From the NCBI GenBank assembly GCA_003427395.1, contig BFEA01000046.1:719499-783195 (forward strand): a stretch of 63,697 nt of DNA. Reading direction: 5' to 3'. The notes beneath the pieces were generated by a model, which saw nothing but the letters and a program-made list of their open reading frames with translations, was not told the DNA's origin and did no database searches. This DNA is from Chara braunii (taxonomy: Eukaryota > Plantae > Charophyceae). Shown piece after piece: positions 71 through 62,303 of this stretch (position 1 is the stretch's first letter; each line of letters begins with the position of its first letter). Position numbers and translations under genes: made by a program.

Positions 71-1735
71 GGATATAATCAACCCCCCCCCAAAAGAAAC
101 AAAATCCCGAAGTGCGTTTTCGGCACCGAAATCCCGAATGCGCGTCAGGATATACCCCCTCCCCCCCAAAAAAAATGACTAACTAAAATCCCGAAATCCC
201 GAAGTGCGTTTTCGGTACCAAAATCCCGAACGCGCGTCGGGATATAATCACCTTCCCACAAAAAAAACGACAAAATCCGAAATCCCGAACGCACGTCAGG
301 ATATAATCACCCTCCGCCAAAAAAACGACTAAGTAAAATCCTGAAATCCCGAAGTGCATTTTCGGCACCGAAATCCCGAACGCACGTCGGGTTATTATCC
401 CCCCCCGCCAAAAAAAAAACTAAGTAAAATCCCGAAATCCCGAAGTGCGTTTTCGGTACCGAAATCCCGAACACACGTCGGGATATATTCACCCCCCCAA
501 AAAAAAACGACTAAGTAAAATCCCGAAATCCCGAAGTGCGTTTTCGGTACCGAAATCTCGAACGCACGTCGGGATATAATCTCCCCCCCAAAAAAAAACA
601 ACCAAGTAAAATCCCGAAATCCCGAAGTGCGTTTTCGGTACCGAAATCCCAAAGGTACGTCGGGATATAATCCCCCCCCGCCAAAAAAAAAACTAAATAA
701 AATCCCAAAATCCCGAAGTGCATTTTCGATACGGAAATCCCAAACGCATGTCAGGATATAATCCCCCCCCGCCAAAAAAACAAATTAGTAAAATCCCAAA
801 ATCCCGAAGTGCATTTTTGGTACCAAAATCCCGAACGCACGTCGGGATATAATCCGCCCCCCCAAAAAAAACGCCTAAGTAAAATCCTGAAATCCCGAAG
901 TGCGTTTCGGTACCAAAATCCCGAACGCACGTCGAGATATAATCCCCCCCCGCCAAAAAAAACAACTAAGTGAAATCCCGAAGTGCGTTTTCGGTACCGA
1001 AATCGCGAGCGCACGTCGGGATATAATCCCCCCCCAAAAAAAGGATATAATCACCCCCCCCCCAAAAAACGACTAAGTAAAATTTTGAAATCCCGAAGTG
1101 TGTTTTCGGTACCGAAATCCCGAACGCACGTCGGGATATAATCACCCCCCCCTAAAAAAACGACTAAGTAAAATCCCGAAATCCCGAACTGTGTTTTCGG
1201 TACCGAAATCCCGAACGCACATCGGGATATAATCACCCCCCCCAAAAAAACTACTACGTAAAATTCCGAAATCCCGAAGTGCGTTTTCGGTACCGAAATC
1301 CCGAACACACGTCGGGATATAAGCCCCCCCCGCCAAAAAAAATCACCAAGTAAAATCCCGAAATCCCGAAGTGCGTTTTCGATACAAAAATCCCGAACGC
1401 ACGTCGGGATATAATCACCCCCCGCCAAAAAAAAAAAACTAAGTAAGATCCCGAAATCCCGAAGTGCGTTTTCGGTACCGAAATCCCGAACGCACGTCGG
1501 GATATAATCCCCCCCCGCCAAAAAAAAAAAACTAAGTAAGATCCCGAAATCCCGAAGTGCGTTTTCGGTACCGAAATCCCGAACGCACGTCGGGATATAA
1601 TCACCCCCCCTCCAAAAAAAAAACGACTAAGTAAAANCCCAAAATCCCGAAGTGCGTTTTCGGTACCGAAATCCCGAACGCACGTCAGGATATAATCCCC
1701 CCCCGCCAAAAAAACGACTAAGTAAAACCGGAAGT
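67..1735. repeat. Tandem array of ~91-bp units (~18 copies)
   Basis: Unit approx. TAAGTAAAATCCCGAAATCCCGAAGTGCGTTTTCGGTACCGAAATCCCGAACGCACGTCGGGATATAATC(C)n(A)n; equivalent positions at 421, 512 and 603. Confidence 0.95.
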
Positions 1736-1899
1736 GCAATTCTGAGATATTCGTGATTGCCCATAACTTGTAATTCTCTCAAAAATGGCACTTTGTTGCT
1801 CTCAAAATACGAACTCATAAATGAACATTTCCTCTTCGCCAAACGTTTTTAGCGATTTCGCCAACCCTTCGTAAATAAGCTTCGCTATCCAATTCGGCG

Positions 1900-2484
1900 T
1901 ATTTTCCGGGGTCCATTGGTCACGAGTGGCTGCTCCGTACCATAATCGCGTCTACTTCACTCGAGAGTCGAGACCGAGCTGCCTCGGAATAGCCGCAGTC
2001 TAGCACTCTGAGTACTAGCTGGCGGGCTACCACACATCCCCTCCGCCACTTACCTCTCACCCCCATTGCCAATACACGGCACGACAGAATCTCACATACA
2101 CTCATTACCAGAAACTCGTCTCCCCTTTTTCTTTTATAGGATCGCCTCCTGCCGCGACCCCTCCATTATAATCGACGAATTCAAACTCCAAGATTAATAA
2201 AATAAAATTAATTCGGATGGTTCATAAAAAAAAAGAGGGACTGAACTCAGACGATCAAGGCCCAAGCAGAGCTCAGCGCGCTACTGCCAACTACCAGTTT
2301 TCGTGAAGTGACGTAAAGCGGCTACAGGTCCGACCCATGAGTCCGATAACGGGATACCGAGGGGCACCCTCCTTTCTTCTAAACACGCCATCGGGCTAAC
2401 CTTAGCGGGTACCCGTGTCCGATGGCAAGGAGGGGGCTTATGACCTTCCGAGGGAGGTGATAAGCCTCCTACCAATGCGGCCGC
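1900..2484 (-). repeat. 3' LTR of G1, continuation after the solo-LTR insertion (truncated)
   Basis: 2170-2484 is nearly identical to 31141-31454; TATAAAAG on minus strand at 2131-2138. Left limit is uncertain. Confidence 0.8.
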
Positions 2485-3383
2485 TGTCGGAGGGCGTGGT
2501 GTTCCGGCCCTCCTCTGTGTACCAAGTCCCTGCATGGTACCGGTCTCTTGCTCTGGTATTGCAGCTAGTAGTGATCTCCATGGTCCTTAGAGTCCAGGTT
2601 GTACCCTACTGTGGACCGGTCCTGTCGGTGCATGCCCTTAGCAAAAGGGTGCGCCACAGGGCTTTCCATTGGTCCACGCAGGCTCGGCGCCCTGTTGTAC
2701 AGAAGAGCACAATCGGCCTGTGACCGTGGTAGCCGCCGGGTTCGGCCTAGGATGCGGAGGTGAGAAGACTGGCTCAGTTTTTTCAACTGCGCGCCAAGCA
2801 CCCCTGTACAGATTTATGGGTTAGGTGCATGAAAACAGGTTACTGTCGGAAGGGAAAGACTGAGCAGAGGGGTAGAAGGAGAATAAGAAAATAAAAACAA
2901 AAGAAAAGAAGGCAAAACGCCTGATCAGCACGAGGATCAAGACCGTTGCTTTAATCTGGAATAATCTGGCGACGGTTGCTTGCTGCGTCAACTGGGTTTT
3001 CTCTTTTCCTTTTACTATTGTTTTTGTTATTACAATTATTACTACTGATTTACCAGCTTTCAGGCGGGGATTTCCCTTTTCTTGAGTCCCGTCACTTTGT
3101 AGGGAGGCCAACGGTTCGGGCTTCGAGTTCGGGCGGTGGTATTGTGGCCTAGATAGGCCCAACCCTTCGTATATCACCTATATCGGGTCTGCGCATCTAA
3201 GCTCCACACAGTAGAACCCCTGTAGCTATATTAGATGGCAGATACAGTGGGGTCTGGAAAGGTGGGTGAAAAGGGATGAGGGCGAAAGTTGGGTTTTAGA
3301 TTCGTGCGAGGACTTGTACCGCTGTTCAGGCGGAGCTGCGGCGTGGAGGAAAATTTGAATCACCACTCTTTTCTTTTCTGTTA

Positions 3384-3384
<1 letters not shown>

Positions 3385-3449
<65 letters not shown>
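3385..3449. repeat. (TAT)n microsatellite in solo LTR
   Basis: Trinucleotide run. Confidence 0.9.
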
Positions 3450-3451
<2 letters not shown>

Positions 3452-3991
3452 TTACCGGCTTTTGGACGTGGCTTTCCCTTTCATCATCGGTCACTTCGCG
3501 GGAAAGCCAACGGTTCAAATGTCTGGCTGTGGTCCACGGCCTAAGTTGGTCGGCCCTAGGCGTCCCGTCTTTGGACGGGCTCAGATTGAGTGTCGAGCGT
3601 TAAAGCCCCAACAGAAGGGCGACCCACGGCCGCTTCGGTAGGAGGCTTATCACCCCTTTGTAGAGGGTCATAAGCCCCCTCCTTGCCATCGGACACGGGT
3701 ACCCGATGGGAGTAGTCAGAAGCTATATTTTAAAGGGGAAAATGCGATCGTCGGTTTCCCGTTATGGGACCACAGTGTCGAACCTGTTGCCATATCGCTA
3801 GGATCTGGGACTGTCAAGAGCGAGGCTGGTTCATGATCGACGGATTGGGTTTTAGGCATGTGTGTTTATTCTCAAAAAATTATTCGGTTTTAATTTATTG
3901 CTTTATTTTAAAAACTTTAAAATTCTTGAAATCCGGTAAGGTTGGAAAAGGACTAATCTGAGTCCTTCGTTTAGAACGCAGGGGTCAGGTC

Positions 3992-3999
3992 TATAAAAG
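3992..3999 (+). promoter_or_regulatory. Putative LTR TATA box
   Basis: CTATAAAAGGAAAAAGG; the same motif occurs at the equivalent position in the G1 3' LTR (CTATAAAAGAAAAAGG, minus strand 2131-2138). Confidence 0.6.
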
Positions 4000-4080
4000 G
4001 AAAAAGGAGTTGAGATATCACCCGCGGCCAGTAGCCTGGTGGTACACAGGCTTTACTACGAACCCTGGTAGAAGAGTAGC

Positions 4081-4620
4081 ATGCTATTGGAAGTTGGCGG
4101 TTTGTGTTGCGCTGTCTACCAGACGAGGGCTGGCTATTCCAAGTGGCTATGGCGTTGCGCGGCTATAGGCCTGGTTACTGGTATCACCAGGCCCGTTGGA
4201 AGCCCGTGTCCGGGGAAGGGCCCTGGATCACCGTTATACTCAACTACGACGGTGGAGAGGAAGTGCTACTGAAGATCAACGTGGAGGGAGCAAAAGAGGT
4301 GGAGATGCGGACCGATGGAAAGCTGCAAGACGCGATTACAAAGGCAAGAGACCGAGCGGAGAGACGCTGTAGGAGGGACGGCATGACGGCGAGACTACGA
4401 ATAACGGTGACTTACCAAGAGACAGAAACTTCCATGGACACAACGGACCTGGAACAGGTCTACTAGGACAGAGACTCGGGAGGGGAAAGTGAGATGAGTG
4501 ACGCAGATCGGGAGACGGACCTCAGGTCCTGGAACAGACCAGGCGAGATCCAGAGGCATCACCGAGCCACGAGGCCGGTGGAGGAGGGACCCGAGGCAAG
4601 CTCGCGACAACCGACACCCA
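4081..4620 (+). pseudogene. LTR-encoded ORF family Z, copy 1 (disrupted)
   Basis: KINVEGAKEVEMR...AITKARDRAERRCRRDGMT.RLRITVTY; homologous to 6500-6961 and 30711-31142. Boundaries approximate. Confidence 0.7.
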
Positions 4621-6499
4621 GGGGTCGAGGGACGGGTGAGAAGCAGGGCAAGGGGAAAAGACAGGCCTGAGAAAAAGACGGAGAGAGTCTGGTGAACGGG
4701 ACTGAACCCGAAACGGGAAAAAAAAGTGCAGTAGCACAGGCACACGTGCGACAGGTGGTGTGGCCTGGAGAGCGAGAAGGCGGTCGGCGAGAGGGGGGAC
4801 TGTGTAGACGGATGGTGGTGATGTGTGAGTCGCTTGAACTGGGAGGACGTGCGCTAATGAGTGACAGTTATGCAGAGAATGTGTAGGCGGGCACGAGAAG
4901 GGGGTGCCAGGGGTCAATAACGAGAGGAGAGGTAAGTGCAGTTACTGAGAGACACACGCTATACGTGGCAAGGCTCTGGAGAGCGGGGAGAGAAGTAAAC
5001 GTATGCAGGCGAGACGCTGAGAGGGACGCAAGAACCTGAGAATTTGTTGTTGACATCAAGCGCCATCGTGTCTGTGTGACACTCTAGCCTACTGAGTGAC
5101 TATGAGTGACTATAAGCGCCATCAGACGCTAAGTGTGAGCTACACGCATGTGCACCTCTCTAGCAATAATGCCATTGCGGGCGGTCAGTGACAAATGCTC
5201 TCTGATGAGACGTGACACGGTCAAGAGTTAGTTGGAAGGAAGACTTGACGCCTGTTGGAGGGGGGGACGCGTTGTACGACCTGCGCACGATGTGGTGATG
5301 ACAACGAGAGCGACAGGGGAGTCAATCGGGGAGAAAGCCTTGGTCTTACGGGGAATACAAGCCAGGCAAGCATAGTTAACTTCAATCGTCACCTACTCGA
5401 TGTGTGTTCGCCTGCTAAGCGCTATGCGCTACTTCCAACTCGTCAAATACGGTGGTGAGTGAACTCGCAGCAGTGAGCGAGACCGAAGAGTGACACATAA
5501 TCAGCACGGGTTTTGCAATGTGGGAAAGTGGATTGAGACTTGATAGCTGAAGTTAACCTTCGCTACCTTCACTCTGGGTTGCAGTTGACGTCACCTGCTC
5601 CGGAGTGGGATAAGCTGTTTTGTCTATGGTTCTTTACTCTGCGTTAACTTCACGCCGTAGTTTAGTCACAATCCCCCTCTCTTTGGTGAGGCCTGTGTGG
5701 GCGAGATATCGAGTTGTTCCTAGCAGTGGTTGCAGATGAGTTGGGTGATCACTAGTTGTATTAAGAGTCACCCTTACTTAAAGGAATTGGGAATAAGCTG
5801 GTATGCCCAAGCACTATACGGGTCTGAAACGCTCAGTATGGAGGCCTGACAAGTAAGTTCGAGCCTCTTCCATGAGTTAATTTTATAATGCAAGTAAGCG
5901 GTTATTCCCCCGATCGTTGTTTGATGAAGCTGGTAACTGTGAAGATTGTTGTAAAAAATTTGTGGTTCTAATTTTTTTCTTCAGCCGTCTTGGAAATTGG
6001 TTGCTGAAGTTGAATGATGTCATAGGGGGAGAAAAAGAGTAACCGAGGGAGTCGTACGATTTAACTGTGAAACCAACTCTGCTCAATTGTGATCCCTCGA
6101 ACTCTGTTTCTCTTTCCGCTCAATTGATTGATGGGAAAGAGGCGATCAGTGATTCGAGAGATAGCCTACCTGTTAGTTAAGTACTTACTCGACGGGGATT
6201 AATCTATGAGCTCATCTATGTTAAGCTTGCTACTGTGAAGGGTTTTAACCGGGGAAAGTCACTAAAGTTTTCTTTGTGACTTTAAGCACAGGCTGTATTT
6301 GGGATTTCTACTGCGAGAGGGAAGGAAGGGTGATGCTCCAGTTACTATAGCTTAAAGATGTTTTTTGTCCTTATTCCATCGGAGATCTTAGCAGATCTCT
6401 ATTTTGTGAACGCTGCAGCAAGACCTGTCAGTCTGGATGGCTCCTTGGTCCTTGTTGTATTTGACCCTGCGATCAAAGTGGGGGGGGGGGGAAAGAAAG

Positions 6500-6961
6500 T
6501 GATGGAGAACGCGAAGAAGGGGCCATGGTGGATGCCTGTCTGAGTTACATCAAGAGTGACAGGCAGGCTAGACTAAAGATTAATGTCTAGGGGGGAAAGG
6601 AGCAGGAGATGGGGGGGGTGTGAAGGTCCAGGGTGTGATTACGGAGGCTCGTAACCGGGCTGAGCGGAGATTCAGAAGGGATGGAGTGACGACGAGTCTA
6701 AAGGTAACGGTTACTTACCACGAAGAGGAGACCTCCACGAGCACCACGGAGAGGGAACGGCAGGAGTTGGATCGGGACTCTGATAAAGAGTATGAAGCCA
6801 GTGAGGACCTGACCCTGTCTTGGCATGGGCTGGAACAGTGGCGGAGAGAGCACCCGCCAGCTGAGTCCGTAGAGGATGGCCCGGAGGCCAGTTCGGGGTC
6901 GTCCGTGAGAGAGAGGACAAGGAACGGAGAGGCAGGACCTTCAGGCGCGCGACTCCCGTAG
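6500..6961 (+). pseudogene. LTR-encoded ORF family Z, copy 2 (disrupted)
   Basis: VITEARNRAERRFRRDGVTTSLKVTVTY...LSWHGLEQWRREHPPAESVE. Confidence 0.7.
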
Positions 6962-7005
6962 AACCCGAGTACGAGGCAGTTACATATACTCAGGCTACAC
7001 GTGGC

Positions 7006-7007
<2 letters not shown>

Positions 7008-7050
<43 letters not shown>
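7008..7050. repeat. (GA)n microsatellite
   Basis: Dinucleotide run. Confidence 0.9.
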
Positions 7051-7052
<2 letters not shown>

Positions 7053-9979
7053 CAGAGGGCAACGGTGGGGTTCAGCGTGCTAATGTCAACTTTGACTTCA
7101 GCATGCGGGAGGAAAAGGAGAGGGAACATGCGTGCATAGACGGCACCGAGGGACGCGTGTAGTGCAGGGGGTGCGCAGCAGAGTGAAAAGGAGGCAACGA
7201 AACGGGAGACCTGGCGGATGAGCGGGATATGAGCTTGCGCAGCGCTGCTAATCTCAACTGTTGCCTTCAAGTTCTCGTGTGGTGTTTATTGTCTGCTAAA
7301 CCACGGAGGGTTCTTCTCGCATCATAGCAGGAGATCGAAGTTAAAGCATGGAAAGGAGAAATCAAATTGATGCGCCTGCACCTCTCTATCTCGAGAGTCT
7401 CAGTGTGGCGTATTGTTCTGATGGAGAAGTCTCCTCTCCCTTTTGTTTGAACGTAGGCTAGAAGTGAGTATAGGTTTCAAGAGTGACACCTGAAATTGTA
7501 TGATCATTGCGTAACTATATAATTAGTACAAAGTGTGTTCCAGCCTGAAAACCTCCCTGAATGCAATCACTGTCTGAATCATTTCAAAACTGGGGTTGCT
7601 TGATTTCCCTTTTACAACTCCTGAGCAATATTTCCCTCAACGTGCCATACGGAACGAAAGAGAAGACGTTATTTGGTCCTAATCAGGGGCGTGTAGGAAC
7701 AGATTACCAGTGCTCATAGTTGATGAGTCGTCCTAAGTGAGAGTTAAGCTCACTCCTGACTAAGGGAAAAAGGAAGCGGGGAAAGTTTCTTACGTTTAGT
7801 GCTCTATTATGTGCACGCAGCTATAACTCCAAATATATTCCTACTCTACGTGCTCAGAATCATGAGTCCGATGGTGACTTGGTTGTACTCAAGATTACGA
7901 TAAGTACAAGCAGAGGCAGCAATCAACTTAATGAGTCTGAGTAAAGACAGGTCTCGTGTCAAGAGTTGTATGAATTTGAACCAGAGTCAAATCAGACTCT
8001 GAGCTCAAAGTCGGGTCAGAATCTGATTTAAGAACCATGCTTGAGCAGTGAAGGGAACCGTAGTTGTCTCAAGTTAGGAATCACTGTGCTCAGCGCTGGT
8101 GAACTATACTAAGGGTTGAGCCTCGTGAGTGAGAAGGACACTCGTACTTGCGGTACACAGTACCCAGTCTGATTTGAGAGTTGAGTACCTACAACCTATG
8201 CCGGACCAGAACCCGTTTGTAGTCTGAGTAGTTCCGAACCCAGGGTGTAATGAGCATGGTCTTGCGGGGTACCTGCACGAAGCTCGTATGACAACTATAT
8301 GCTATTCGGTATTAACCATGCAGTTTAGCTCGTCTGCGAAGGGAAAGCCAAAGTGCCAGCTGTGTGGGTCACCTCATGTCTACAAAGAAGTTGGGAGGCA
8401 GTAAAAGTGAGGCTCCCCATTAAAAGTAAACCACGATCTTGTAATAAGTTACAGGTTTTGGGGGATTGAGAACAGTTTGAATCATGCCTTCGTTTTGAGA
8501 CAAGCAGACAGCCTGACATCATGCAGTGAGGGAAGTCAAAAAAAAAAAGCATGTTACTGAGAGCCCACACCACTCTGAAAGCTGAGCTCGACAGAACTGT
8601 CCTCGACCTACCCTGCTCGTTGCCTGGTCCCTAGTGAGAGAATAGGAGACAAGAGAGAACATTGGGTTCTAGTAGTGGAGGGTAGCTCTGTGAAAGACAA
8701 GGGAGAGGGGTGAATGGGAAAAGCTTACATGAGTATTGAACCTCGCTTCCTAACACGTGTTGAAAAGAGGACGGAAGGGAAAGATCATATTGAAAGCGCG
8801 AATTATTTTTGTGTTCGCAATAATAAAATTGCACAGTCACAGTTCGCCTCTGGAGACTGCTGAACTGATCCGATCAGGGCCCAAGCACGGTAAACACCCA
8901 GGTTCCTCCTCCACTGACTACCTGTGTTTTTTTTGTCAAAGAGAGACCCACTTCGTTGTCTACAGGTCATTCTGAAAGACCAGATCAGCATCAACTCCGA
9001 CATTTGAACCATAGGTACCCGTTATCGGTCTGCGATCATTCCTACCACAAAAGGGCAGTGTAGATCAACTACCTTGTGGCACAACATCCGGAACGAGTTT
9101 TTCAAACAAGTGCTTTGATAGTCTTCGGTCAGCGTCCAGCCAACGCTTTGGCTGTATCAAATTGTAGCCAAAAAGCACTCCAAACAGCGAGCAAGCAACA
9201 GTCAGATAGTTATCAGGCATCATCCGGTTGGCACTTACACTACTTTATATCTGTGGTTTTCCACTTAGTTGAGACTCACTGCTATGAGATCTAAGTGTAA
9301 GAGAAGGGACATGAAGGATGGAAAGATCCTGGTGGTGAAGAGCACACTAATCAGGGATAAGAGAGAGGGATGAGAGGAAGAAGCATGTAAAGACACGGAA
9401 AGACACAGATTAACTCAGAGAGAATTCGCAGTCAGGACGGCGGGGGAGCGAAAATATATCGAATATGTGATTTATTTCCACGGACATGACGGGAGGCTAC
9501 ACAGTACTGGTTCAAGTTCTGAAACTGTTGAACAGGCTAGGACTAAGCTCGTGTGAGCCAGCAGTGCTCAAGGCAACCCCGGAAAAGTCACCAGTAATTA
9601 AACAATAACAGATTGCAGTCTTCTCTTGCACCAGTACGGTATGTGGCTCCACTGCTCAGTGACCCAATGTGTCCAACGACTACACAGACAACTCTTCAGA
9701 TAGCCCTTCAGACAATCAAATAGCCAATTAGTTTCCTAATCAACAGCCACAATTTTCTGACCAACAATTTTTCAATTCGTAAACAGCTACCAGACCAGTA
9801 TTCAGACCAAGCAATCAGACCAGCAAGCAACCGGAGAAGCAATCAGACCTAGCAACCAGATTAGTAAGTAATCAGAAAAACAAACAGATCAGCAATTCGG
9901 CAAGTAATCTAGCAGTTAGTTCAACATCTAAGTTAGCAAGTAAACCAGAGATAACCAGCAGGTATCAGGCATCTTTGTC

Positions 9980-10561
9980 ATGAGTACAGTGCAATCTATT
10001 CCAGTCAGTGAGACAGTGCTGACTAATCTCAACCGGATCTCGTGCAAGGAGGCTTTCCATTATCGTTATGTCAGCGCCATTGGCTTCAGACAGGGAGACT
10101 TGTCAATCTTCATTGTCCAGACCAGTTTTGCTGACGGTACTATCCATGACCTGAGGCGATACCTGAAGAAGGGCAAGGAGGCTCATGATCATTTCGATCC
10201 AATCTGGATCTCAGCCACTAAATACCTCGAGCAGAGAGAGAGGGAGCTCGATGAAAATGGCACTACGCTGATCCGCAACTTTGGGCCAAAGCTTTACACT
10301 GACTATCTCAGGCCTCCTGGTCCTTCCCCCCTTACAGATGGCACGAGTTGGTTTGATATGATCTGCTTGGCAAAGAGGTATATCTCTCCAGCAGTGATCG
10401 ACATTGAGGCACTGACTGAGCCCACCGAGTATCCTTACCTCAGACGAGAAGTCTTTTCAGTGGACGGACTGCCTACATTGTGGGAGGAGTTTTGCTCCAT
10501 GGTTAACTTCCGTGTCATGTACCTCGGATGGTCATGCTCAGAGCTTGCTGGCTTCAGATGA
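9980..10561 (+). CDS. LTR-encoded hypothetical protein, domain-X family (193 aa)
   Basis: ATG-initiated open frame near the 3' end of the solo LTR. Codon-aligned homolog at ~25300-25949 (-): MSTVQSIPVSE vs MSTVQSFPVSE, LIRNFGPKLYTD vs LIRNFGPKFYTD. Confidence 0.7.
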   Translation: MSTVQSIPVSETVLTNLNRISCKEAFHYRYVSAIGFRQGDLSIFIVQTSFADGTIHDLRRYLKKGKEAHDHFDPIWISATKYLEQRERELDENGTTLIRNFGPKLYTDYLRPPGPSPLTDGTSWFDMICLAKRYISPAVIDIEALTEPTEYPYLRREVFSVDGLPTLWEEFCSMVNFRVMYLGWSCSELAGFR

Positions 10562-11124
10562 CTCTTTGTCACGAGGCCTCAATTTCAGATTGTATGTGGG
10601 CTTGGGTCACAGCACCAGAGATTAACAATGAAAAGAGAAATTGAGAGAAACTGACCAGAGGAATGAATGAGGACTCTTGAGAGGTGTTGACCATGCTTGT
10701 TTATGTGTACTTTCTGATATTATTATAAGTTCTCATTCATCCTTCATTCATTTAATTTTGTCTTTGCTCAAGTCAGTCGGTCTTGCTTCTTGCTTTGCTC
10801 TTGCCTGATGATTGCTATCATGGATGATTCTGTCACAGTTCTCAAAATCGGATTGACATAATTGATGCATGCATATCACCCCATAATTTTATGGTTATTA
10901 TTTTTATAATTCTCTGCTGTTTCGAATCAAAATAAAAGATTCCTAAGACCGGGGACTCGCGAAGACCGCAATTGAAGGGTCTCGCTCGAAGCTGGACGCA
11001 CACAACAGAAAGGGATTTGCATTATTTTATTTATTTTATTTATTGCAATCATACAAAGAATCTTGCGTGACAGCCTATTGGCTTTCCGGTCGCCTGAAGC
11101 GGTCCGACTGAAAAAAGTGCGACA

Positions 11125-11876
11125 CCGCGGGCTGCCCCTCTTTTGGGGTTCCACCACGCGCCGCCCAGTCGAACAGGTCAGACCCCAGAATGATAAGTAA
11201 AGAGTCGGTCAGTCTAGACCACCAAGCTGCGCTCGGGGTTCGAAAATGAACCGTTAGCTACTCGCAGAACGACAAGAGGGGAAAATGAGTAAAGGAATCA
11301 GTAATAATAATAATAATAACAACAAAATAAGATAAGAAAAGAAATCATAACGCCGCCTCGGCCAGAGGTCACTAGATCGTCCCAAACAGAAGTGAGGGTC
11401 CAGATCTGTACGTAGATCTGACACTTGACTTCCTTTTTCTTTTTATCCCCATTTTCTTTTATTTTCCTTTCTTTCTTTCTTTACCCCTTTTCCATTCGAC
11501 TGTAAGAGCGGGTCAATGTACTTAACCCATAACCTGACAGAGGGGCACTCGGCGCGTAGTAGAAAAGACCACGCCGGTCTCTCTACTCTCGCGTCTCTGG
11601 GCGAGCCCGGCGGCTACCACGGCTACAGGCCGGTAGTGCTTTGCTGTACAGCAGGACGCCGAGTCTGCGTGGACCAAAGGAAAGTCCAGTGGCGCACCCC
11701 TTTTGTTGGGGAGGGCACCAACTGGACTTGTTCATAGTAGGGTACTATTCAGGTACACCAGGAGCGTCGCGTAGGCTTCGGGAGCAACCCAACGAGCCCC
11801 TGACGTTGAGCGAAAAGCAGTTACTGAGTAGGAATTTGGCACACAGAGGAGGGTCGGGACACCGCGCCCTCTTACA
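11125..11876 (-). repeat. 3' LTR of G1, first part
   Basis: Minus strand starts TGTAAGAGGGCGCGG; roughly 90% identical by eye to 31451-32204. Confidence 0.88.
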
Positions 11877-12279
11877 TAATACCAAACCCCCACCCAGCGT
11901 CCCCGCTGGGTCGAAACGCGTTCACAGTCGGTATAAAATAGCATGTACGGGCGGTACATTCATTCTTTTTCATTGCGACTCGTAGTGAAGTTTGTGTTAC
12001 AGTTTTTGCAGTAACTGACGTCCCATGTTTTCTTAGCGCTTCGCGTTTTCCTTCTTGCTGCTCGTAGCAATCCCATGCGATCCGCGCAAGTATTTTTCTC
12101 CTCCCTTCTTTTGCGGTTCGCTATTTTGATTTTCTGATCTACCCCACCACAGTAATTTTTCACTTCTCCTTAATAGCTAGTCCTCTTTTGTCCTAGCAAT
12201 ATCTTTCTTAGTCTCGATCCTTAGTACAACAACTTTCCATCTTTCTCGTTTTCTTCTCAGCCACCATCTCGTTCTCACA

Positions 12280-12642
12280 ATGCCTGAAGCACGTAGGGGA
12301 CAGGGAAGAGGGAGAGGTGGTAGAGGAGGGAAGGCGCGTGAAGAGCCGCCAGCTCGCGCACGGCGTGAATATAGTTTAGAGGAAGAGGAAGATGAGCCAA
12401 GGGGCTATGGCGCACACTCGAGGCCTTACCCCCGCCACTTACTGCCAGCGTGGTACGAAAGAACTCCATCCCCGAACAGGATGGAGTACTTTCAAAAGAA
12501 GTTCGAGGTGCGCTACGGCGCACCCAGCACTTCTTCCCCTCCATATACTCCCAGGGCCCCTACCTCTCCCACAGTAAGTAGAGCCCTAGTACCTGTTCCC
12601 CCACTTTGTCCCTTGTACTGCCCCCTTTTCTTCTCATGCTAG
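12280..12642 (+). CDS. Putative antisense ORF in the G1 3' region (RG-rich N-terminus, acidic tract)
   Basis: ATG ORF MPEARRGQGRGRGGRGG...EEEEDE..., ~400 bp from the 3' LTR start, opposite to gag-pol. Confidence 0.4.
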   Translation: MPEARRGQGRGRGGRGGKAREEPPARARREYSLEEEEDEPRGYGAHSRPYPRHLLPAWYERTPSPNRMEYFQKKFEVRYGAPSTSSPPYTPRAPTSPTVSRALVPVPPLCPLYCPLFFSC

Positions 12643-25949: not shown

Positions 25950-28900
25950 GAGTACGATAGTTGTTGCTCCTCTGACTTTCTCAGGTTTATTAAACTGCTT
26001 CTGTGACGTGGCTGTTTCGATTGTTACTCGTGCTCTGACAATTTACTGTGTCCAATTGTGACCAATCCCAAATCTGGTCCGTTTTTTCCAGTCTGTCTTT
26101 GTTTGATGTTTGCACAATTTCTCTTGGAGTCGGTGATTAGATCCTCTTACGGTTCACCAACAATAATTTTTCTTGCCTCTTCAACGGATCCTACAAATGA
26201 GAAGGTGCTGTGTAATTTTTCATTTGACCCGTGAATATAGCAAGTGTACTCAATGCGTGTCTGTTCCTTCACATGTGTCAAAGCGTGTTCCATCATGAGT
26301 TTTGTTTGATGGCAAAGGTCCTATGCTACTTTTTCTTCCCAGCCTTCGTCTCTGTCTCGGTGCAGTGAACAGGTCACTCTCAGTGTGCTCTCACTCCTTA
26401 TATCTCCACAAAGACCCATTGTACTAAAATGATATGATTGCCCTCACGTGTCAAGATACATGCTGGAACTGATATGAATGGTGATAGATTCTGATTGACA
26501 GAAATCTGCAACGCACCACCCTTCAGGCTGAGCGTCTCTAAGAAATATATTAACTGAGAGAGACCGGTCTGTCGTAGTTGTCAGAAAATGGTTAATTAAT
26601 TGAAGCTTGAATAAAATCACAAAGCGAGCGCCTCGTTTCGACTCGTCCTGTTGTTCTTAATGGTGAGTCAGGGCCATGCAGTCTGCCATTACGATCGTAG
26701 AACTGAAAGACGTACTCAATGTTTTCCCCTCCCTCTGAGTTTATTGATCGCACGTTCCCTTAGCATAGGAATTACTATGCAATGTCTCGAATAGCCTAGG
26801 CCTTCCAACTCTCATGTTTGTCCAGGTTAGTTGTACTTTTAACGTCTCTGCTTTTTTTTTTCCGTTTTCTTTATCCTCTTCAAAGTGGTGATCTTAGAGT
26901 TAAGAGGAAGAAGGCAAGATTTTACAGTCATGCAGGGTTCACCACATGCCACGCACACACAGATATTGTTGCAGACTCAGAAGTACCATGGTCATGTACA
27001 GCATAAGGTTCCACTAAACACGGTCTGTCTTATCGTTACTCAGAGGATCTCCGTCCCGACCACCTAGACAAACACCGTGGCAGGTACTCCTAGTCACTGT
27101 TAGTACGCATGCAGCCACTAAGTGCCATCTTTTACAGCTCCTGGACTCTGGCTTCTCAAACTCGAGGGTAGACTCGTAGGATTATGCCACTAAACAATTA
27201 CTGACAGCTTCCTCGACATGACAGATTCGCACTCACCCCTTTTCTTTCCCATTTTTCTCACAGGTCTCTTCCTGTCGATCCTTCGGGGTAGAATGCCGAA
27301 AACTCCGATACTCGGGCTTTTTACTGTCAATGCACTCTAGTAATCGCCAGTTCTAGATACAGTCGACAAACATGCAATAATTGGCTCATGCTGCGATTTG
27401 CATAGTGTCAGTGCCTTACCGAACTCACAGCAAGGACTGGTCCCTCACACCTGCAAAAAGCGGTACTTGGTATGGGGACTGATTCCTTAGAAATGACCAG
27501 TGGAGTCAGCGACACGACATTTACACAACGATGATCCCTCTTTCCTCAAAGCGTTAGTATTGGCATGAAAACGACCACACTAAGGATGCGTTCAAGCCGC
27601 ACCAAGCACTGTGTCACCCAGACCACAACATACTCAAACACAAAAGGGTACTTCAGTGATTCTGCAACGACCATTGTCAGGCTCCTTCACACATAGTAGT
27701 ACTATCCTAAGAGCTTTGTTTTTGGCCTTCCGCTCACGACTTGATCACTCTAAGCTCGTTCGCCCCATTCTTTATGTCATTACTGGATTCTCCTTTGGTC
27801 TTTGTTATCAGGCTAATAGATAAAGATTGGCGTTTTGACCCCACCACACGACCATGCTCAGTTCATTGAGTTAGGTCGCAGGGTTATTCTGTACTCAGTA
27901 CTGTAACCCCGAGCATGAGATTATTCTCGCTTGGGACTACGTGCGCAGAGGATGCATATGCTTTAGTCATAACCTATTAGCAGGATTCACGCTTAAAACA
28001 GGATGAGACCCTGTGCACATTTGTATGGGTTTCACCCGTGCTCGACACCCTCTTGGTATCGAACACAACTGATGTTCATATTTGGTTCATAAGAAGGTGG
28101 GGGGGTTAATGAATTCCTCAATTCATCTTCAGCACAAAGACCTGCTTGTGCAGCGCCGTATGTTTGCTTGCTGTCATGGAATATAGGAAGATTAACACAC
28201 TTGCATGTAGGCCAAGCAGAGCAAGATCATCTAATCACCATAAAAAAGGAACTTAGCAAGGAGGTAAGCCACTTTTCTGAGCACCCTCCTTTTCCCCATC
28301 AAACACATAGGGCATACAACGAACGAGCATCATCCTATTAAGCTCGCGGATCAAATTGCCAAAACAAAGCTCTTATTTATTCTATTTACAAGCGGCAACA
28401 ATACTTATTTAGTCATATCGAGGCATACCAGCGAGAAAGACTCACAGTCATGGTCAAGAAGTTCGGTTCCACCAGCCCATCAAAAGATGCTTTGCCTATT
28501 TTTCTCAGTATAATGATTAAGTAATAAAAAACAAAAAAGGAAAAGACAATACTCCGGGGAAGAGGTTCAGAACAGTACATTAATATCTCGCTCGTGAAGT
28601 CCCTTGTTACCCACCGATTATCACTCGAAGAGCTAAGTCTAGCCAATCATGTTTAACACACCTGAAAATTGGGCACTTGACCACTTTAACCCGCCAAATC
28701 AGACACGGGAATGCCTGGCCAATAGCCTCTGATGGAAACAGGACAAGAGGAGGGGGATGAAGCAGCCATTACTACTACCACAAAGGTGTCTCAAGAGAAT
28801 CAAACTCGAGTCCCAATATGTTTTCAAGGGAGAACTACGTTCTGATGCTCAACTCTCCGTTCCTTCCGAAGCTCTACTCTTACTTACGGCTCAACAAGAG

Positions 28901-30710
28901 ACTGTTACTCACGCACAAGCGAATAACACACCATCACCGATCGAAAGCACTCGGCTCAATCTCTCGAAAGGGAACCTCTGTCATTCATACTTGATACAGT
29001 CATCCACCCCCTCACCTTCGCCAACCACTATAGCAAGGGTTGCTAGAGTAGTGTCACATCTGGAAGAGGTAAAAATCATTATCACAAACTCGTACTGGAG
29101 ATGTCAACAAATTATTATTCGTACCTTAGGAGGATAGAATGTCGAGCCCCCTTTGCTACGTGTTGTGAAATGTAAATAGTATCGTCTTGTGACCAGTAAT
29201 TCACTGACACCGAATGTACAAAGAACCAACTCAATCATCGCCCAGAACCTGCATGTGGCTCCTAGCATCCAAAACTACAACTCTCTTCTTCTTTTGCCAC
29301 CCATGGAATGAGAAGTCGAATCAACCGGGTTACACACAAAACCATTGCCCTTTGGCGTAGATCGTCTGTCGCGACCAACCAAGTTGACCTCGTAGTACAG
29401 ACTCGCACGCCTCACTTGTCTCTTACACAACTTATTCTCACTAACTGGTCCACTGAAAACACTCGAGGTAGCGAGCGAACTCAGGCTCATGAAGGAGCTC
29501 CCGTAAGGAAAATCAAAGATCATTCATCGGAGGCAGATGGCATCGACCGAACTCAAGGCGTGGCTCAACTCACTCGTCTCCTCTGCCAATGACCCAGAAC
29601 TGAGCTGGCTCCCTCATGAGTACATGTGCATCCGACGGAAATCAAGTTGACGACACATGCAAGGAGGAGAGCGGGAAACGCTGATGATGTCACCCAATAC
29701 AGGCGACGCTCGTCTACATTCATGCTTGTCACACCCGCACTTATCTCTCCTTTCTTCGCCGTAGCGCGTGCTCGGGACCTCTCCTGATCGCTTGCTCTGA
29801 TGGTTAGTGACTGCAATCCTCGTACAAGCGAGGGGCTGTTCGATCTGTCTCCAAGACCTGTCTCCAAGACAGGGAAGCAGTTTGTGGTTGGCGTGAAGCA
29901 CGCAAAACAAGTCACGACCTCCACCATGCCCCGCAGGTTAACCTCTTTTCCTGGTCGACACCACTCACACTGCGCCTACAAAGTCTTTTCCCTCTCGTTC
30001 TTGATTGTCATTGTTGCAAGCGCGTCTGGTCTGTAACTACCCCATTTTCCTTAGTATTGCCCCCGCCAAGAATTAGCCTCTGGACCACTCTGTCTGGCTT
30101 GCCACACGCTGAAGTCAAGTTTGAAGTCAGCATTCCGAGCACACATACTGCGCTTGCCTCCCCCACGGTCTAGTTCTCCTTTCTTGAGTGTCGTCTGTCG
30201 TGTCCCTACTGGCCGCTGATCCTTTCAATCTGGTGAGAGCATAAAGTCCCCTAGCACAGAGCAAGGCTGTAGTTTCAAGCTGCGCACCGTTCGCAGGGTA
30301 ATGATGGCTATCCCACAGGGGCCAGGCTCGTGTTGAAAAGCCCAATGCCCACCATGGACACTCCATGCACTGCTGCGCTCCCTCGTACTCTTACCGCCAG
30401 CTAGACACCGCCCCCTCTGTCACACATGAACTACTTCGATCTCCCGTTGACCTCGGAGACTCTACTCTCTTACATGTGTCTCTCCCTTGTCTTTCATTTC
30501 AACCGTCTTTTTTTTTTTTGGTGTCGTAGTCGAGTGGTCTCACTCTCACACCTGCTATTTTTTCAAAACTGACCTCTGGGCCAACCTTTACCGACTCGGC
30601 TGACGGGCGTTCTCTACTCCACTACCCTAACTCATGCCAGGACTGGGTCTGGGCGTCACTTGCTTCGAACTCAGCCCCTGAGTCCCCCTGTTTTTCTAGT
30701 CATGCTCCGC

Positions 30711-31142
30711 CTAGCGGTGCAGGTCCTTGTGTCGCTGAGCGTTCGTTTTTAAGCCCCTCTCTACAGACTCGGCGGACGGGTGATTCCATCGCCATTGGTC
30801 CAGTCCATGCCAGGACAGAGTCGTGGCATCCAAATCGCTCTCCTCGCTTTCGGCCTCAGTGTCGCGATCTAGGTGTCGTTCTTCCCGATCCACCGTGTCC
30901 GTGGATGTCCCTTCGTCCAGGTACACGACAGTCACCCTCATCTCGTCCGTGACCCCGTCTCGTCTGCACCTCCTTTCTGCTCGATCTTTTGCCATTGTGA
31001 TCGCCATCTGTAGGCCTGGGTCCGCCCTCATCTCCTCCTCTTTTCCCCCTTCTACATTTATCCTCAGCTTCATCTCCCCCCTGCCGTAACTGTAGTCCAG
31101 CACAACTGTCACCGTAGGCCCATCTCCCGACATCCGCTCCAA
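30711..31142 (-). pseudogene. Family-Z ORF in the G1 5' LTR (5'-truncated)
   Basis: RINVEGGKEEEMR...AKDRAERRCRRDGVT...LSWHGLDQWR. Confidence 0.72.
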
Positions 31143-32204
31143 TCGACGAGTTGAAACTCCAAGATTAATAAAATAAAATTAATTCGGATGGTTCTGAAAA
31201 AAACGAGGGACTGAACTCTGACAATCAGGGCCCAAGTAGAGCTTAGCGTGCTACTGCCAACTACCAGTTCTCGTGAAAGCACGTAAAGCGGCCACAAGTC
31301 CGACCCATCAGTCCCATAATGGGATACCGAGGGGCACCCTCGTTTCTTCTAAACACGCCACCGGGCTAACCTTCACGGGTACCCGTGTCCGATGGCAAGG
31401 AGGGGGCTTATGACCTTCCGAGGGAGGTGATAAGCCTCCTACCAATGCGGCCGCGGGCTGCCCCTCTTTTGGGGTTCCACCGAGCGCCACCCAGTCGAAC
31501 AGGTCAGATCCCATGACGGTAAGTAAAAAGTCGCCCAGTCTAGACCACCAGGCTGCGCTCGGGGTTCGAAAATGAACCGTTAGTTACTCGGAGAACGACA
31601 AGAGGGGGAAATCAGTAAAGGAATCAATAATAATAATGATAATAACAACAAAATAAGAAAAGAAAAGAAATCATAACGCTGCAGCGGCCAGAGGTCACTA
31701 GATCGTCCCAAACAGAAGTGAGGGTCCAGATCTGTACGTAGATCTGACACTCGACTTCCGTTTTCTTCTTATCCCCATTTTCTTTTCTTTTTCTTTCTTT
31801 CTTTCTTTACCCCCTTTTGCGTTTGACTGTAACAACGGATCCATGTACCTAACCCATAACTTGACAGAGGGGCACTTGACACGCAGTAGAAAAGACAGCG
31901 TCGGTCCCTGTACTCTCGCGTCCCTGGGCGAGCCCGGCGGCTACCACGGCTACAGACCGGTAGTGCTTTGTTGTACAGCAGGGCGCCTAGCCTGCGTGGA
32001 CCAAAGGAAAGTCCAGTGGCGCACCCCTTTTGCTAGGGAGGGCACCAACTGGACCTGTTCATAGTAGGGTACTATTCAGGTACACCAGGAGCGTCGCGTA
32101 GGCTTCGGGAACAACCCGACGAGCCTCTGATGTTTGAGCGAAAAGCGGTTACTGAGTAGGAGCCTGACACACAGAGGAGGGTTGGGACACCGCGCCCTCC
32201 GACA

Positions 32205-32880
32205 GCGCGACGACCGAGAAGTCTCCAGTATGATGATAGTAGCACTCTAACCGCGTCCCCTTCGGCTTATCAATGTACACGTGCATGCAGTCAATTACCC
32301 CCACACATTCGGGGAACCCCTTCGCCTCAAATAAATTTAGCACCTCTTCCAAACAACGTCCTGTAGGGAATTGGAGGAGGTGGCCGTACTTGTGGAGGAT
32401 AGCATCTGCGACGTCCTCCTTGCTTCTCAATGCACTCGCAAGCCCCATACCCAAACTGTGGGCGGATTGCCGGTAGTATTCGCCCATTGCCCACCGGATG
32501 AGTGCGCAAGTAAACTTCTGCCCGGTTGGTATAGGCAACCGAAAATTGGTAGGCGAACGATGGATATGGGGCCCGATGCGCTGAAGAACTTGCAAAAACA
32601 GTGGTCGCGGTAATCTGCAGAACCGCAAGAACACCTTATCGTGCTCTACACCCACCCTTTGAAGGTCCCTTTACAAACCCCCGCTACGCTCCACCATCCA
32701 CAATCGCCTTCTTCGTTGCATGTGTCTTCCCAACTTCTGCTCCGCCAAGCAGCTCAACGCCATGTCGTGAACCACCCCCCTTGCGAGCATCGTACGCGCC
32801 CCCGACACATCTCGGAACATGAACGGGGTGATGGCGACAGCTTCAAGCACAACCATGACCGTAACGTTGCGGCTGTTCAT
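32205..32880 (-). pseudogene. Harbinger (DDE_Tnp_4/HARBI1-like) transposase, N-terminal half
   Basis: F.RFCRLPRPLF...GFPECVGVIDCMHVYI...YYHHTGDFSVVA; cut exactly at the G1 LTR end; one internal stop. Confidence 0.88.
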
Positions 32881-58900: not shown

Positions 58901-61100
58901 CTCACCATCTACCGACGCCGTTCTAAAGACCCACTGGCGATACTTTTCGGGAGAGAGAGTGAAGGGTTTCTCCATGGACCCCAATCTCCTAAAAATACCC
59001 CAAAGCTTCCTGTATGGAGGGATACCCTGATCGATGCAATGCGTGTACAGCGTCCACAGGCCTCCAAAGGTTAACCCCAAACTCCTTCCCCTCTCTAGAA
59101 GCCTCACTATCTTTCCTTCGATCTTTCCTTGGAACAGGAAAGACGGCACCCTCATGGTTAATAGATAGCACGCCCTTGGAAGCTCCCCTTCCCCCGCGAA
59201 CCTCTCCCTCTCTACAGCCACAAACATAAGTTGCTCCCGAACCCTACTTATCCATTCCCCTTGCACTTCCCTCGCCTCTCGCAACAACTTACCCAGCCCA
59301 CCCCCTTGTCCTAGGACCAGGGGTACTACGACTTTCGCCCAAGCCTCCGGGCCAACGAAGATAACTGCGGCCACCTCCAGACTCCTCTCAACCCCTCAAC
59401 TCTCAACCTCTTTGGACTCTATCCACACGAACTCCCCACTGACCGTGGGCCTTCCCCCTTCTATCCTCCCCCAATCGGGCATACCCCCGTTCCTAGGGAT
59501 TAACCTACAGGTCTCACAGCCTTCTATGAAGGATTCGACGAAGCGTCCCGGTTCCTTATCATGGAACACCATTCACTCTAAAACATTTTTTGGGACACTC
59601 CGAGGAGCCTTTGGTAACCGTAATCTCGTCCGCCCTGGTGGTCCCGAGCTGACTCCCTAATGATCCCCGCGCGAATCCTACACGCTTTGATTCCTTACGG
59701 TACAGGGTTCTCCACGCAGTAGGTGTAGTACCAATGGAGCGACCTAACAGATAGCTGCTACCCTCTCTTCCGTACTTTGGATCGCACAACCTTCTCGTAC
59801 CGCTCCTCCTTCCCGCTCACCCTCCGGAAAACGAAAGACGGGAATACGGCCTGTATGCACCCTGTGGCACGAGGGTATTCCTCGTCTCGAGCGCAAGTCA
59901 CCCTCACCTCGATTAGTGGGCAGTAGCGAAGGGGCTCCGCCTCAAAAATCTGCCTCAAAATCGGACCCGCTCGAGTTTCCCAATGATGCGCACGGTACCA
60001 ACCTAGGACCAAGTGAGTGACGTAATCTACCCAAGCCTCCCTACTCAGATAGAATGTTCCTTCCGCACGGATCACCGTTCATCCAGGCCTCTTCCCGCTC
60101 GGGGGCCCGTTCTGGTACCACCTGTCCCCTTCCCAAGTTCCTACCGCGAATCGAGTCCAAAGGAAAACCCCCTCCTCTAGTTCTAACCCTCTCTCGCGAC
60201 CGGCCAGATACCTCTCGGTGCGATGGTCTAGGGGGACGCTAAAGCACTCCCTGTCCTTGCTTAAATCTGCTCTCTCTATTCGTACCCCCTCCTCTTCAGT
60301 ACCTTCTACGATCCTAACCATCCCCTTGGACTATCTCCTCTATGATTTGAACCAGCGCTCTCCACCCGTCCGAACCGTCAAGGAAGGCTTCCGGAATAGT
60401 AGGAATAGGCCTCTCCCCTCGCAAATACGTCCGATACCCCAACGAGTAGAAGTAATTAATCTCGTAGGCCCCAAGCAGTTCCCTCTCGAGCCGCGAGTGG
60501 CCGACCGCCTCCTCCCAGCTATCTAAAAAACCTGCCTCTCTATCTGCACCTTTTTCCACGTACAAAGCTATGTCGAAGTCGCCAGTCCACTAGTAGAAAT
60601 TGTAGCACCACACGTCCATCCCGTCTTGACTACCCACACTAATCCCCGAAGGTTCAAACTCCAGAGCCCTCAGACTCATGGATTGACCGTTCTCACTACT
60701 CTCTCCACGATCCCTATTAGCACTTTCCAATCGTCCGACCCGTCGAGATAAGCGTCCGGGATTACCGGCGCCGGACGACCACCCCTGGGGTAGGTTTGGT
60801 AACCTAAGGAGAAAAAGTACTTAAACCCGTAACTCCTTAACTCCCCCCTTGAACCACGAGAGTGGCCTATCGCCTCTTCCCATCCACAAAGGAAATCCTC
60901 CCCTTGATCTAGCCCTTCCTCTACGTAGACACCCACATCAAAGTCACCCGTCCATAGTCGAAAAGTGTCTTTGATCAAAAGGAATCTGTAAGTTCCACTA
61001 CCTTTTGGCCACTCGAGAGACCACCTCTAACCCGCAAGGAGAAGATGCCTGTGAGCTCAGAAGGATCAAATGGACCAGAGAAGGAACGCTGTCTCACTCA
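55914..61100 (-). pseudogene. G2 pre-gag polycistronic accessory ORF array (about 8 cistrons: 2 domain-X, about 5 family-Y, 1 other)
   Basis: Reconstructed cistrons: ~61100-60676, 60679-60314, 60321-~59560, 59572-58853, 58908-58183, 58186-57434, 57250-56774, 56765-55914. ATGA overlaps at 60676-60679 and 58183-58186. Confidence 0.8.
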
Positions 61101-62073: not shown

Positions 62074-62303
62074 NNNNNNNNNNNNNNNNNNNNNNNNNNN
62101 NNNNNNNNNNNNNNNNNNNNNNNNNNNNNNNNNNNNNNNNNNNNNNNNNNNNNNNNNNNNNNNNNNNNNNNNNNNNNNNNNNNNNNNNNNNNNNNNNNNN
62201 NNNNNNNNNNNNNNNNNNNNNNNNNNNNNNNNNNNNNNNNNNNNNNNNNNNNNNNNNNNNNNNNNNNNNNNNNNNNNNNNNNNNNNNNNNNNNNNNNNNN
62301 NNN
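62074..62303. other. Assembly gap (N run)
   Basis: 230 N; the same ~35-nt sequence lies on both flanks. Confidence 0.99.

Follow-up and report, generated by a model that had tools for sequence, protein, structure and literature searches.

The stretch of the Chara braunii genome analysed here (assembly GCA_003427395.1, contig BFEA01000046.1, forward-strand positions 719,499–783,195; 63,697 nucleotides, hereafter the window) contains very large long terminal repeats (LTRs) of Ty3/Gypsy type, designated A, B and C, which carry on their sense strand members of three gene families named Z, Y and X. All DNA used for comparison was taken from the same assembly, the product of a single genome project. 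LTR A occupies 8,640 bp of the forward strand without assembly gaps, with TGTCGGAGGGCG starting at 2485 and AAAAGTGCGACA finishing at 11124, and is collinear with LTR B and with seven other LTRs of the genome; LTR B lies on the reverse strand (24806–32204, 7,399 bp) and shows the reverse complements of the same termini at 24806 and 32204. A first-pass annotation of the window had delimited these two LTRs by their TGTCG...CGACA ends, and both pairs of boundaries were confirmed. A 4-bp target-site duplication (TSD), CCGC, surrounds A (left copy 2481–2484, right copy 11125–11128). Self-comparison of the window indicated that the flanks of A (2170–2484 and 11125–11871) are collinear with positions 31141–32199 of B at 91–92% identity, and that the two flanks overlap by exactly 4 bp, at 31451–31454, on the uninterrupted B copy; since B thus provides a paralogous empty site with a 4-bp overlap, CCGC is a true TSD and not a chance repeat, and the exact duplication reported in the first-pass annotation is borne out. 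The flanks belong to a third LTR copy, C, which had escaped the earlier description; A sits in C in the opposite orientation, the insertion point being 750 bp into C. The self-comparison revealed no internal terminal repeats in A, no primer binding site (PBS) or polypurine tract belonging to A was found, and both ends of A are homologous to both ends of B. LTR A is a solo LTR, a single TSD-bounded unit without an internal region, PBS or polypurine tract.

LTRs B and C appear to enclose a decayed internal region of 12,929 bp on the reverse strand (11877–24805), recognised by Pfam matches and interrupted by many stops. The Pfam families follow each other from 21.7 to 16.8 kb as Retrotrans_gag, Asp_protease, RT_RNaseH, Integrase_H2C2 and rve, and place gag at 21474–21767, the protease at 19833–20555, RNase H at 18124–18459 and the integrase at 16777–17547. 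No Pfam match was obtained for the reverse transcriptase (RT) core of this decayed element; an RT-like stretch was read by eye at 18602–19018, and RT is also recognisable in gene models of related copies. The predicted order of domains, gag, protease, RT, RNase H and integrase, is that of Ty3/Gypsy elements. The 18-nt sequence TGGCACCGTTGCCGGGGA (24784–24801, reverse strand), 4 nt (GAAA) past the end of B, complements with one mismatch what we take to be the 3′ end of plant tRNA-Asp(GUC); the position of the tRNA-Asp primer site proposed in the first pass stands, and its assignment to tRNA-Asp depends on this presumed tRNA end and includes the mismatch. No tRNAs or RNA families were found in the LTRs themselves. 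At the other side of the internal region, just upstream of C, lies the candidate polypurine region GGGTGGGGGTTTGG (11877–11897, reverse strand); the G-rich 40-nt stretch preceding C is identical in 38 of 40 nucleotides to that preceding an LTR at another locus (L008, see below). The putative PBS is thus beside the 5′ LTR and the putative polypurine tract beside the 3′ LTR. Between the PBS and gag, two leader open reading frames (ORFs), paralogous to X, occupy 24377–24108 and 23601–23074 of the reverse strand, the latter with one frameshift.

LTR C is divided by the insertion of A. Its proximal part, the first 752 bp of the 3′ LTR (11125–11876, reverse strand), is 91% identical to 31451–32199 of B and begins with the mutated terminus TGTAAGAGGGCG, compared to TGTCGGAGGGCG in B; its distal part (1975–2484, reverse strand) lies to the left of the insertion and has its own TATA box at 2139–2123. 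Similarity of C to other LTRs is cut off after ~1.27 kb, near 1975; C keeps the TATA box and ~165 nt more, followed by unrelated sequence and a satellite. B and C are 91–92% identical, but the comparison is limited to 1.06 kb by the loss of the TATA segment from B and the truncation of C. That B has lost the TATA box along with the initial part of Z follows from the alignment with seven other LTRs, in which the AT-rich motif of B jumps straight into Z. A reading based on the motif CCGACA was rejected, as CCGACA is the reverse of the Z start region; B has lost the segment from the TATA box to the Z start, and C keeps it. The satellite is an array of 91–93-bp units at 68–1737 (~16–18 units, 78–89% identity), preceded by a (TC)n run at 1–67; the array reaches the window start and adjoins the point where C stops resembling other LTRs, and it may reflect either an insertion into C or a rearrangement.

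This arrangement would be explained by an old minus-strand Ty3/Gypsy element of ~27.7 kb, named G1, with B as its 5′ LTR and C as its 3′ LTR; a younger relative would have hit C and later collapsed to the solo LTR A. The length of 26–28 kb suggested in the first pass for an intact element holds arithmetically, as 7.4 + 12.9 + 7.4 kb for G1. Two further observations were made in the window. A second minus-strand element, G2 (60317–62900), has a similar primer site, TGGCGTCGTTGCCGGGGA, at 62900–62883, and two X-like ORFs in its leader (61026–60679 and 60589–60317); the last 800 bp of its LTR are unlike A or B. A weak patch resembling small-subunit rRNA (15947–16067, forward strand, opposite to G1), between the integrase and the 3′ LTR of G1, scored 23–24 bits compared to a gathering score of 50 and is probably a chance match or a decayed fragment.

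A sensitive comparison of A and B gave a series of ordered patches of 54–71% identity, situated, in the numbering of LTR A, at 1–566, 909–1307, 1697–2172 (Z), 6823–7133 (Y) and 7455–8640 (X and the 3′ end). The last 1.19 kb are 71% identical, Z of B is matched twice in A, and a middle part of ~4 kb in each LTR is unalignable. The collinearity claimed in the first-pass annotation, with three common ORF families at equivalent positions and a large unalignable part between them, agrees with this result, including the reality of all three families. The motif EY..Y.HG, which it regarded as a remnant, does occupy a shared position; it is not a mere remnant, since the full third gene family, Y, is intact in other copies.

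Nine stretches of the assembly were fetched around Chara gene-model loci matching X or Z; they contain seven further measurable LTRs of ~7.1–9.6 kb and three fragments (two in L002 and one in L005). The LTR of L001 extends from 8784 to about 15850 and is cut at the 3′ end (at least 6.9 kb); that of L006 spans about 357–8443 (~8.1 kb), its 5′ start not being matched; L007 contains a solo LTR of 7,480 bp (8273–15752) with the perfect TSD GCGC, and L011 a solo LTR of 7,657 bp (8379–16035) with the perfect TSD GCGT. L008 has a 3′ LTR of 9.6 kb (7836–17443, including 2.76 kb of N), located after a G1-like polypurine region and internal sequence; the LTR of L009 (about 8669–16349, ~7.7 kb) has both ends in assembly gaps, and that of L010 (8409–15543, 7,135 bp) has the flanks GCGG and ACGG. 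All these other LTRs have TG..CA ends. The order of modules is the same in A, B, L001 and L006–L011: 5′ block, Z, unique middle, Y, X, 3′ block. Counting of matches in 250-bp bins among eight LTRs (L011 excluded) indicated that the first 1.75–2.25 kb and the last 1.5–2 kb match nearly all the others, and that the intervening 2.5–4.7 kb match none of them. The prospect raised in the first pass, that most copies might turn out to have short LTRs, does not correspond to what was found, as the seven additional LTRs are ~7.1–9.6 kb long and keep the module order. Target sites were recorded as CCGC at 2481–2484 and GCGC at 32205–32208 in the window, GCGC at L007 8269–8272, GCGT at L011 8375–8378 and, for L010, the flanks GCGG/ACGG at 8405–8408; all five are CG-rich 4-mers, which hints at a possible integration preference.

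Gene Z encodes a protein of 155–173 residues with the motif RAERRCRRDG. Its first copy in A (4149–4667, forward strand, ~172 codons) has an in-frame stop at 4464–4466, and its product shares 91% identity with the annotated Chara protein P0019; Z is intact in L001, L006–L008, L010 and, in a short form, in B (31133–30711, reverse strand). Profile searches found Y, a protein of ~100 residues (IEYV.YF.G..G.LHS...VE.AR), in one or two copies in all the LTRs; L007 and L008 have it as an open frame of ~100 codons, and it is broken in A (9269–9553, forward strand) and in B, where profile and alignment comparisons recover it in pieces (26759–26595 and 26443–26150, reverse strand). Gene X is intact in A (9980–10561, forward strand, 193 codons), has longer open frames in L001 and L007, and is divided into three pieces in B (26042–25402, reverse strand). 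Divergence between A and B at the first, second and third codon positions is 0.275, 0.19 and 0.47 for X and 0.30, 0.28 and 0.56 for Z. Ratios of nonsynonymous to synonymous divergence (dN/dS) computed by the Nei–Gojobori method, a check that the first-pass annotation had proposed for the LTR ORFs, are 0.09–0.14 for X (0.09 for A and L001) and 0.13–0.20 for Z; for Y, the proportion of nonsynonymous differences, pN, is 0.21–0.5 and is lower than the synonymous one, pS, of 0.67–1.0, synonymous sites being saturated. None of the three families behaves neutrally, and these codon patterns clearly indicate that Z, Y and X are under purifying selection at the protein level. The LTR does carry a gene cassette, as had been proposed, and it consists of three gene families in an order fixed across the LTRs.

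AlphaFold modelling predicted compact alpha/beta domains for X and Z, with predicted local distance difference test (pLDDT) values of 85–93 for residues 1–130 of X and ~80 for Z. Searches of Pfam revealed no family for Z, Y or X. Foldseek searches of PDB and searches of VIA wide, BFVD and Atlas found no fold match above background for X or Z (the best Z-scores in VIA wide being 5.0 for X and 5.7 for gene Z), and language-model look-alikes of both had scores below 0.9. Common ancestry of Z and X is unsupported, because their profile–profile comparison was not significant (probability 0.4%, E-value 0.14). A word-indexed search with X gave no match; the hits of an exhaustive HMMER search with X were limited to two chimeric Chara models (GBG80537.1 and GBG69355.1) and three short metagenome ORFs. 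The search with Z revealed 35 Chara braunii "hypothetical proteins" with long open frames, 12 of the 35 having 155 residues. Every homolog of Z, Y or X that was found is a Chara braunii protein or comes from a short metagenome contig, and the copies located on DNA all occupy fixed positions within LTRs or leaders. These conserved small proteins without enzyme motifs most likely serve the cycle of the element itself or counter host silencing.

Several database entries related to these genes were noted. The chimeric models GBG80537.1 and GBG69355.1 (L001 10001–48321 and L002 10001–68272) splice Z and X to RT fragments across 38 and 58 kb, and at least 35 annotated models (proteins P0006–P0040) are the LTR gene Z. 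Two contigs of the ENA metagenome assembly ERZ27272674 encode complete X-like proteins of 131 and 139 residues (L003 95–584 and L004 22–441), pointing to X-like genes in another charophyte-like genome of the same sample; next to one metagenome X-like ORF, another ORF begins 1 nt after its stop.

The ends of the LTRs are conserved outside the genes as well. The 5′ block is conserved over 1–1.5 kb, and its first 1.4 kb are best read as non-coding, because no three-base periodicity was detected there. The eight-copy alignment delimits a conserved non-coding 3′ end of ~570 bp in A (10562–11124, forward strand); its divergence between A and B is 25%, compared to 47% at the third codon positions of X. 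A TATA box, CTATAAAAGGAAAAAGG, lies in A at 3991–4007 (forward strand), 158 nt before the start codon of Z. A canonical TATAAA (CTATAAAAG or a near variant) is found 150–260 nt upstream of Z in A, C and L006–L010, and the variants GTTACAAAA and GTTATAAAA occupy the same relative place in L001 and L005; the box is located 1.1–1.9 kb into the LTR, and the TATA noted ~1.5 kb into the LTR in the first-pass annotation is conserved among copies.

The middle of the LTRs changes from copy to copy, and one conserved feature was found in it, an 85-nt island that nhmmer detected in all eight of the LTRs compared. It lies at 6105–6221 in A (forward strand), 28324–28215 in B (reverse strand), 12435–12540 in L001, 5044–5128 in L006, 12206–12286 in L007, 12594–12679 in L008, 13442–13521 in L009 and 12416–12516 in L010, on the same strand in each of the eight LTRs and 3.6–4.8 kb into them. 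The motif of the island comprises a purine run, GGGRAAARRGG, followed by GCTTACCT...AAGT; analysis with RNAalifold gave a negligible signal of structured RNA. The island may serve as a processing signal or prime plus-strand synthesis at a second site.

Mapping of genome-project DNA contigs to positions 5225–11224 of A revealed two stretches, ~1.4 kb together, that other genomic copies lack. The first, of 1,025 bp (6436–7460, forward strand), contains a second, partial copy of Z (ORF 6584–6958) and an (AG)n run; some other copies are without it, as indicated by contig joints from 6435 to 7461 and from 6366 to 7461, and its depth is above that of neighbouring bins. The second is a nested insertion of 375 bp (8182–8556, forward strand) resembling a short interspersed nuclear element (SINE); it shows a duplication of TGAGAG and, close to its 3′ end, a run of A. 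In several variants among the contigs, 8164 is joined to 8557 and the insertion site between them is undisrupted. Given these two later additions, the family LTR represented by A would be nearer 7.2 kb. Summed DNA depth over the middle of A is fairly even (~25–350, compared to 5–11 for contigs identical to the locus), so the middle is present in several genomic copies, but it is not built from high-copy repeats. Comparison of the LTR middles with the rest of the ~330 kb of sampled DNA gave no match, and searches within the middles revealed no protein domains of transposable elements (TEs), no long ORFs and, besides 8182–8556 and 6436–7460, no termini or duplications. The last 1.1 kb of A, comprising X and the 3′ end, has a depth of 4,800–84,000, 100–1,000 times that of the LTR middle, which indicates that this module is common to very many LTRs of the genome. 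Three oligo-dT RNA-seq runs mapped to the same part of A yielded 391, 13 and 0 reads; both strands are represented, and most of the reads fall in the last 1.1 kb, where copy number is high. Some of these reads cross the LTR end (11124) into PBS-like sequence. Pile-ups of read starts or ends and splice joints were not found on A 5225–11224, the reads being too sparse to imply silence.

Very probably, these units are real LTRs of a Ty3/Gypsy lineage specific to Chara braunii, with a normal LTR length of ~7–9 kb and a fixed series of modules. The series comprises a non-coding 5′ block of 1–1.5 kb, the TATA box, Z, a fast-changing spacer of 2.5–4.7 kb with the 85-nt island, one or two copies of Y, X, and the conserved 570-bp end abutting the putative tRNA-Asp primer site; integration yields a 4-bp duplication. 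Several facts weigh against this interpretation. Even copies with 82–90% identity in Z and X have middles that cannot be aligned with each other, and so fast a turnover is without a demonstrated mechanism. B has no TATA box; the LTR pair of G1 is poorly documented, only 1.06 kb being comparable, which is a weakness; and the fetched loci yielded no complete element flanked by full-length giant LTRs on both sides. Several comparison loci are gapped, as in L008 with 2.76 kb of N in 9.6 kb, and errors of repeat assembly in the single genome project are without an independent check. The RNA reads are few, lie on both strands and roughly track DNA copy number, so that they may reflect DNA carry-over.

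A different explanation, which we consider improbable, is that the true LTR is short and that the units of 7–9 kb are swollen by nested insertions between Z and X. It would account for a middle of 2.5–4.7 kb that differs in every copy and for the excess of DNA depth, 100–1,000-fold, in the last 1.1 kb over the middle, and A does hold the two later additions at 6436–7460 and 8182–8556. However, in nine full-length LTRs the middle has a similar size and the same place, with the island in the same order and on the same strand in the eight tested; apart from the two named additions, the middles lack the TE domains, long ORFs, termini, duplications and matches to sampled repeats that were searched for, and the even, low-copy depth over the middle of A does not suggest a mosaic of high-copy families. 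Moreover, Z on one side of the middle and Y and X on the other are both inside TSD-bounded units. A run of independent nested insertions is very unlikely because of the island and the constant module order, and the short-LTR explanation is largely refuted by the present data.

Still less probable is the view of A, L007 and L011 as complete mobile units that are non-autonomous; they would be cassettes of genes with ends resembling those of LTRs, mobilised by a Gypsy integrase, and B would merely resemble them. These three units are indeed bounded by TG..CA ends and 4-bp TSDs and have a TATA box and genes of their own, and no complete element with two such LTRs was encountered in the fetched loci; but they lack direct repeats at their termini and have neither a PBS nor a polypurine tract, the same unit abuts a PBS in B and a polypurine region with internal Gypsy sequence in C and L008, and no known route of reverse transcription copies such a unit alone, while recombination between LTRs explains the solo copies simply. 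The idea that Z, Y and X were genes of the host before their capture, or are remnants in decay, with constraint as an artefact of few related copies, is hardly credible in spite of the lack of a known family or fold and the broken copies of X in B and of Z (first copy) and Y in A, as many independent pairs with saturated synonymous divergence display the constraint, homologs are limited to Chara braunii proteins and short metagenome contigs with the DNA-located copies at a fixed LTR or leader position, and 35 annotated Z models have long open frames.

For the reading as giant coding LTRs, two models of transcription can be offered. According to model (a), which we prefer and put just short of an even chance, the conserved TATA box is the LTR promoter; genomic RNA would begin just upstream of Z, and Z, Y, X, the PBS and the X-like leader ORFs would precede gag on one RNA. 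The repeat and 5′-unique regions together (R+U5) would then measure 5.5–7 kb, and the first DNA strand made by reverse transcription would be of the same length. In favour of the model are the conservation of the TATA box and the serial arrangement of X and its leader paralogs in G1 and G2; these paralogs, just downstream of the PBS, and the RNA reads crossing the LTR/PBS junction are consistent with a transcription start upstream of X. Model (b), only slightly less probable than (a), assumes that the TATA box drives only a separate Z messenger and that genomic RNA starts in the last 600 bp of the LTR, leaving Z, Y and X in the 3′-unique region (U3); the three genes would then be at the 3′ end of the RNA, similarly to sag in the LTR of mouse mammary tumour virus (MMTV). 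In its favour are the last segment, unusually conserved and abundant, and the ordinary length of strong-stop DNA that the model implies. A stricter proposal, that the TATA box is the only promoter of the element and produces a polycistronic, virus-like leader in which an R+U5 of 5.5–7 kb encodes Z, Y and X and is followed by the X-like ORFs before gag, seems rather unlikely. If true, it would mean that strong-stop DNA of several kilobases is made before the first strand transfer, and that the LTR is a working gene cassette and not merely a control region.

LTRs are commonly taught to be non-coding control regions of a few hundred base pairs to about 5 kb, and the maximum length set in LTR finders is usually far below 7–9 kb. 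Such programs would miss or wrongly split a lineage with LTRs of 7–9 kb that is abundant in an algal genome of 2 Gb; this concern about annotation is supported, because at least 35 "hypothetical proteins" are Z and gene models spanning 38 and 58 kb combine RT fragments with genes of the LTR. Three selected orphan families within an LTR pose the question of how genes are expressed from a repeat that is also promoter and terminator, and a second question concerns the accessory functions needed by a giant retrotransposon. If transcription starts at the conserved TATA box, the lineage would stretch the limits accepted for the initial steps of reverse transcription. Full-text literature searches, the coverage of which did not extend to the Chara genome paper and Repbase, returned no description of these LTRs in Chara, and no other retrotransposon with a gene inside its LTR was found in the full-text literature searches.

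A passage of a 2012 paper (PMC3485330) gives a size range for LTRs from 80 bp to "more than 5 kb", the latter for Ogre, describes LTRs above 3 kb as uncommon and, citing Neumann et al. 2003, reports "more than 5 kb" for the LTRs of pea Ogre. In their layout, the Chara elements can be likened to the Ogre/Tat group, both being very large Ty3/Gypsy elements with LTRs of exceptional length, ORFs additional to gag-pol and non-coding stretches that are hypervariable. The extra ORF of Ogre is located in the internal region. G1 too has extra ORFs upstream of gag, the X-like leader ORFs, with no known relation to Ogre ORF1; unlike Ogre, the Chara elements have LTRs of 7–9 kb compared to ~5 kb, bear the additional genes Z, Y and X inside the LTR and reside in a charophyte alga. 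Rice Retrosat2 has, according to a passage of the same 2012 paper (PMC3485330), an LTR of over 3.2 kb and an orphan ORF0, stated there to be of unknown function and to occur in no other organism. It is similar to the Chara elements as a long-LTR Gypsy element with an orphan ORF, its LTR being less than half as long.

Barley large retrotransposon derivatives (LARDs) are non-autonomous and have LTRs of ~4.4 kb. They resemble the Chara elements in their multi-kilobase LTRs and many solo copies; however, the interior and LTRs of LARDs are non-coding, whereas the Chara LTRs are coding and G1 carries gag-pol. The nef gene of the human and simian immunodeficiency viruses (HIV/SIV) overlaps the 3′ LTR. 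MMTV sag is described, in an excerpt of PMC2191198, as a superantigen gene inside the LTR. Like sag and nef, the Chara genes are conserved coding genes in a repeated LTR, and hence present twice per provirus; they have no sequence or fold similarity to either. MMTV, HIV and SIV are vertebrate retroviruses with one such gene and an LTR of 0.6–1.3 kb, whereas in Chara three unrelated gene families are found in a retrotransposon LTR of 7–9 kb. In its ends, its priming and its pol, the lineage is a canonical Ty3/Gypsy one; its LTRs far exceed the quoted size range and contain a conserved cassette of three gene families.

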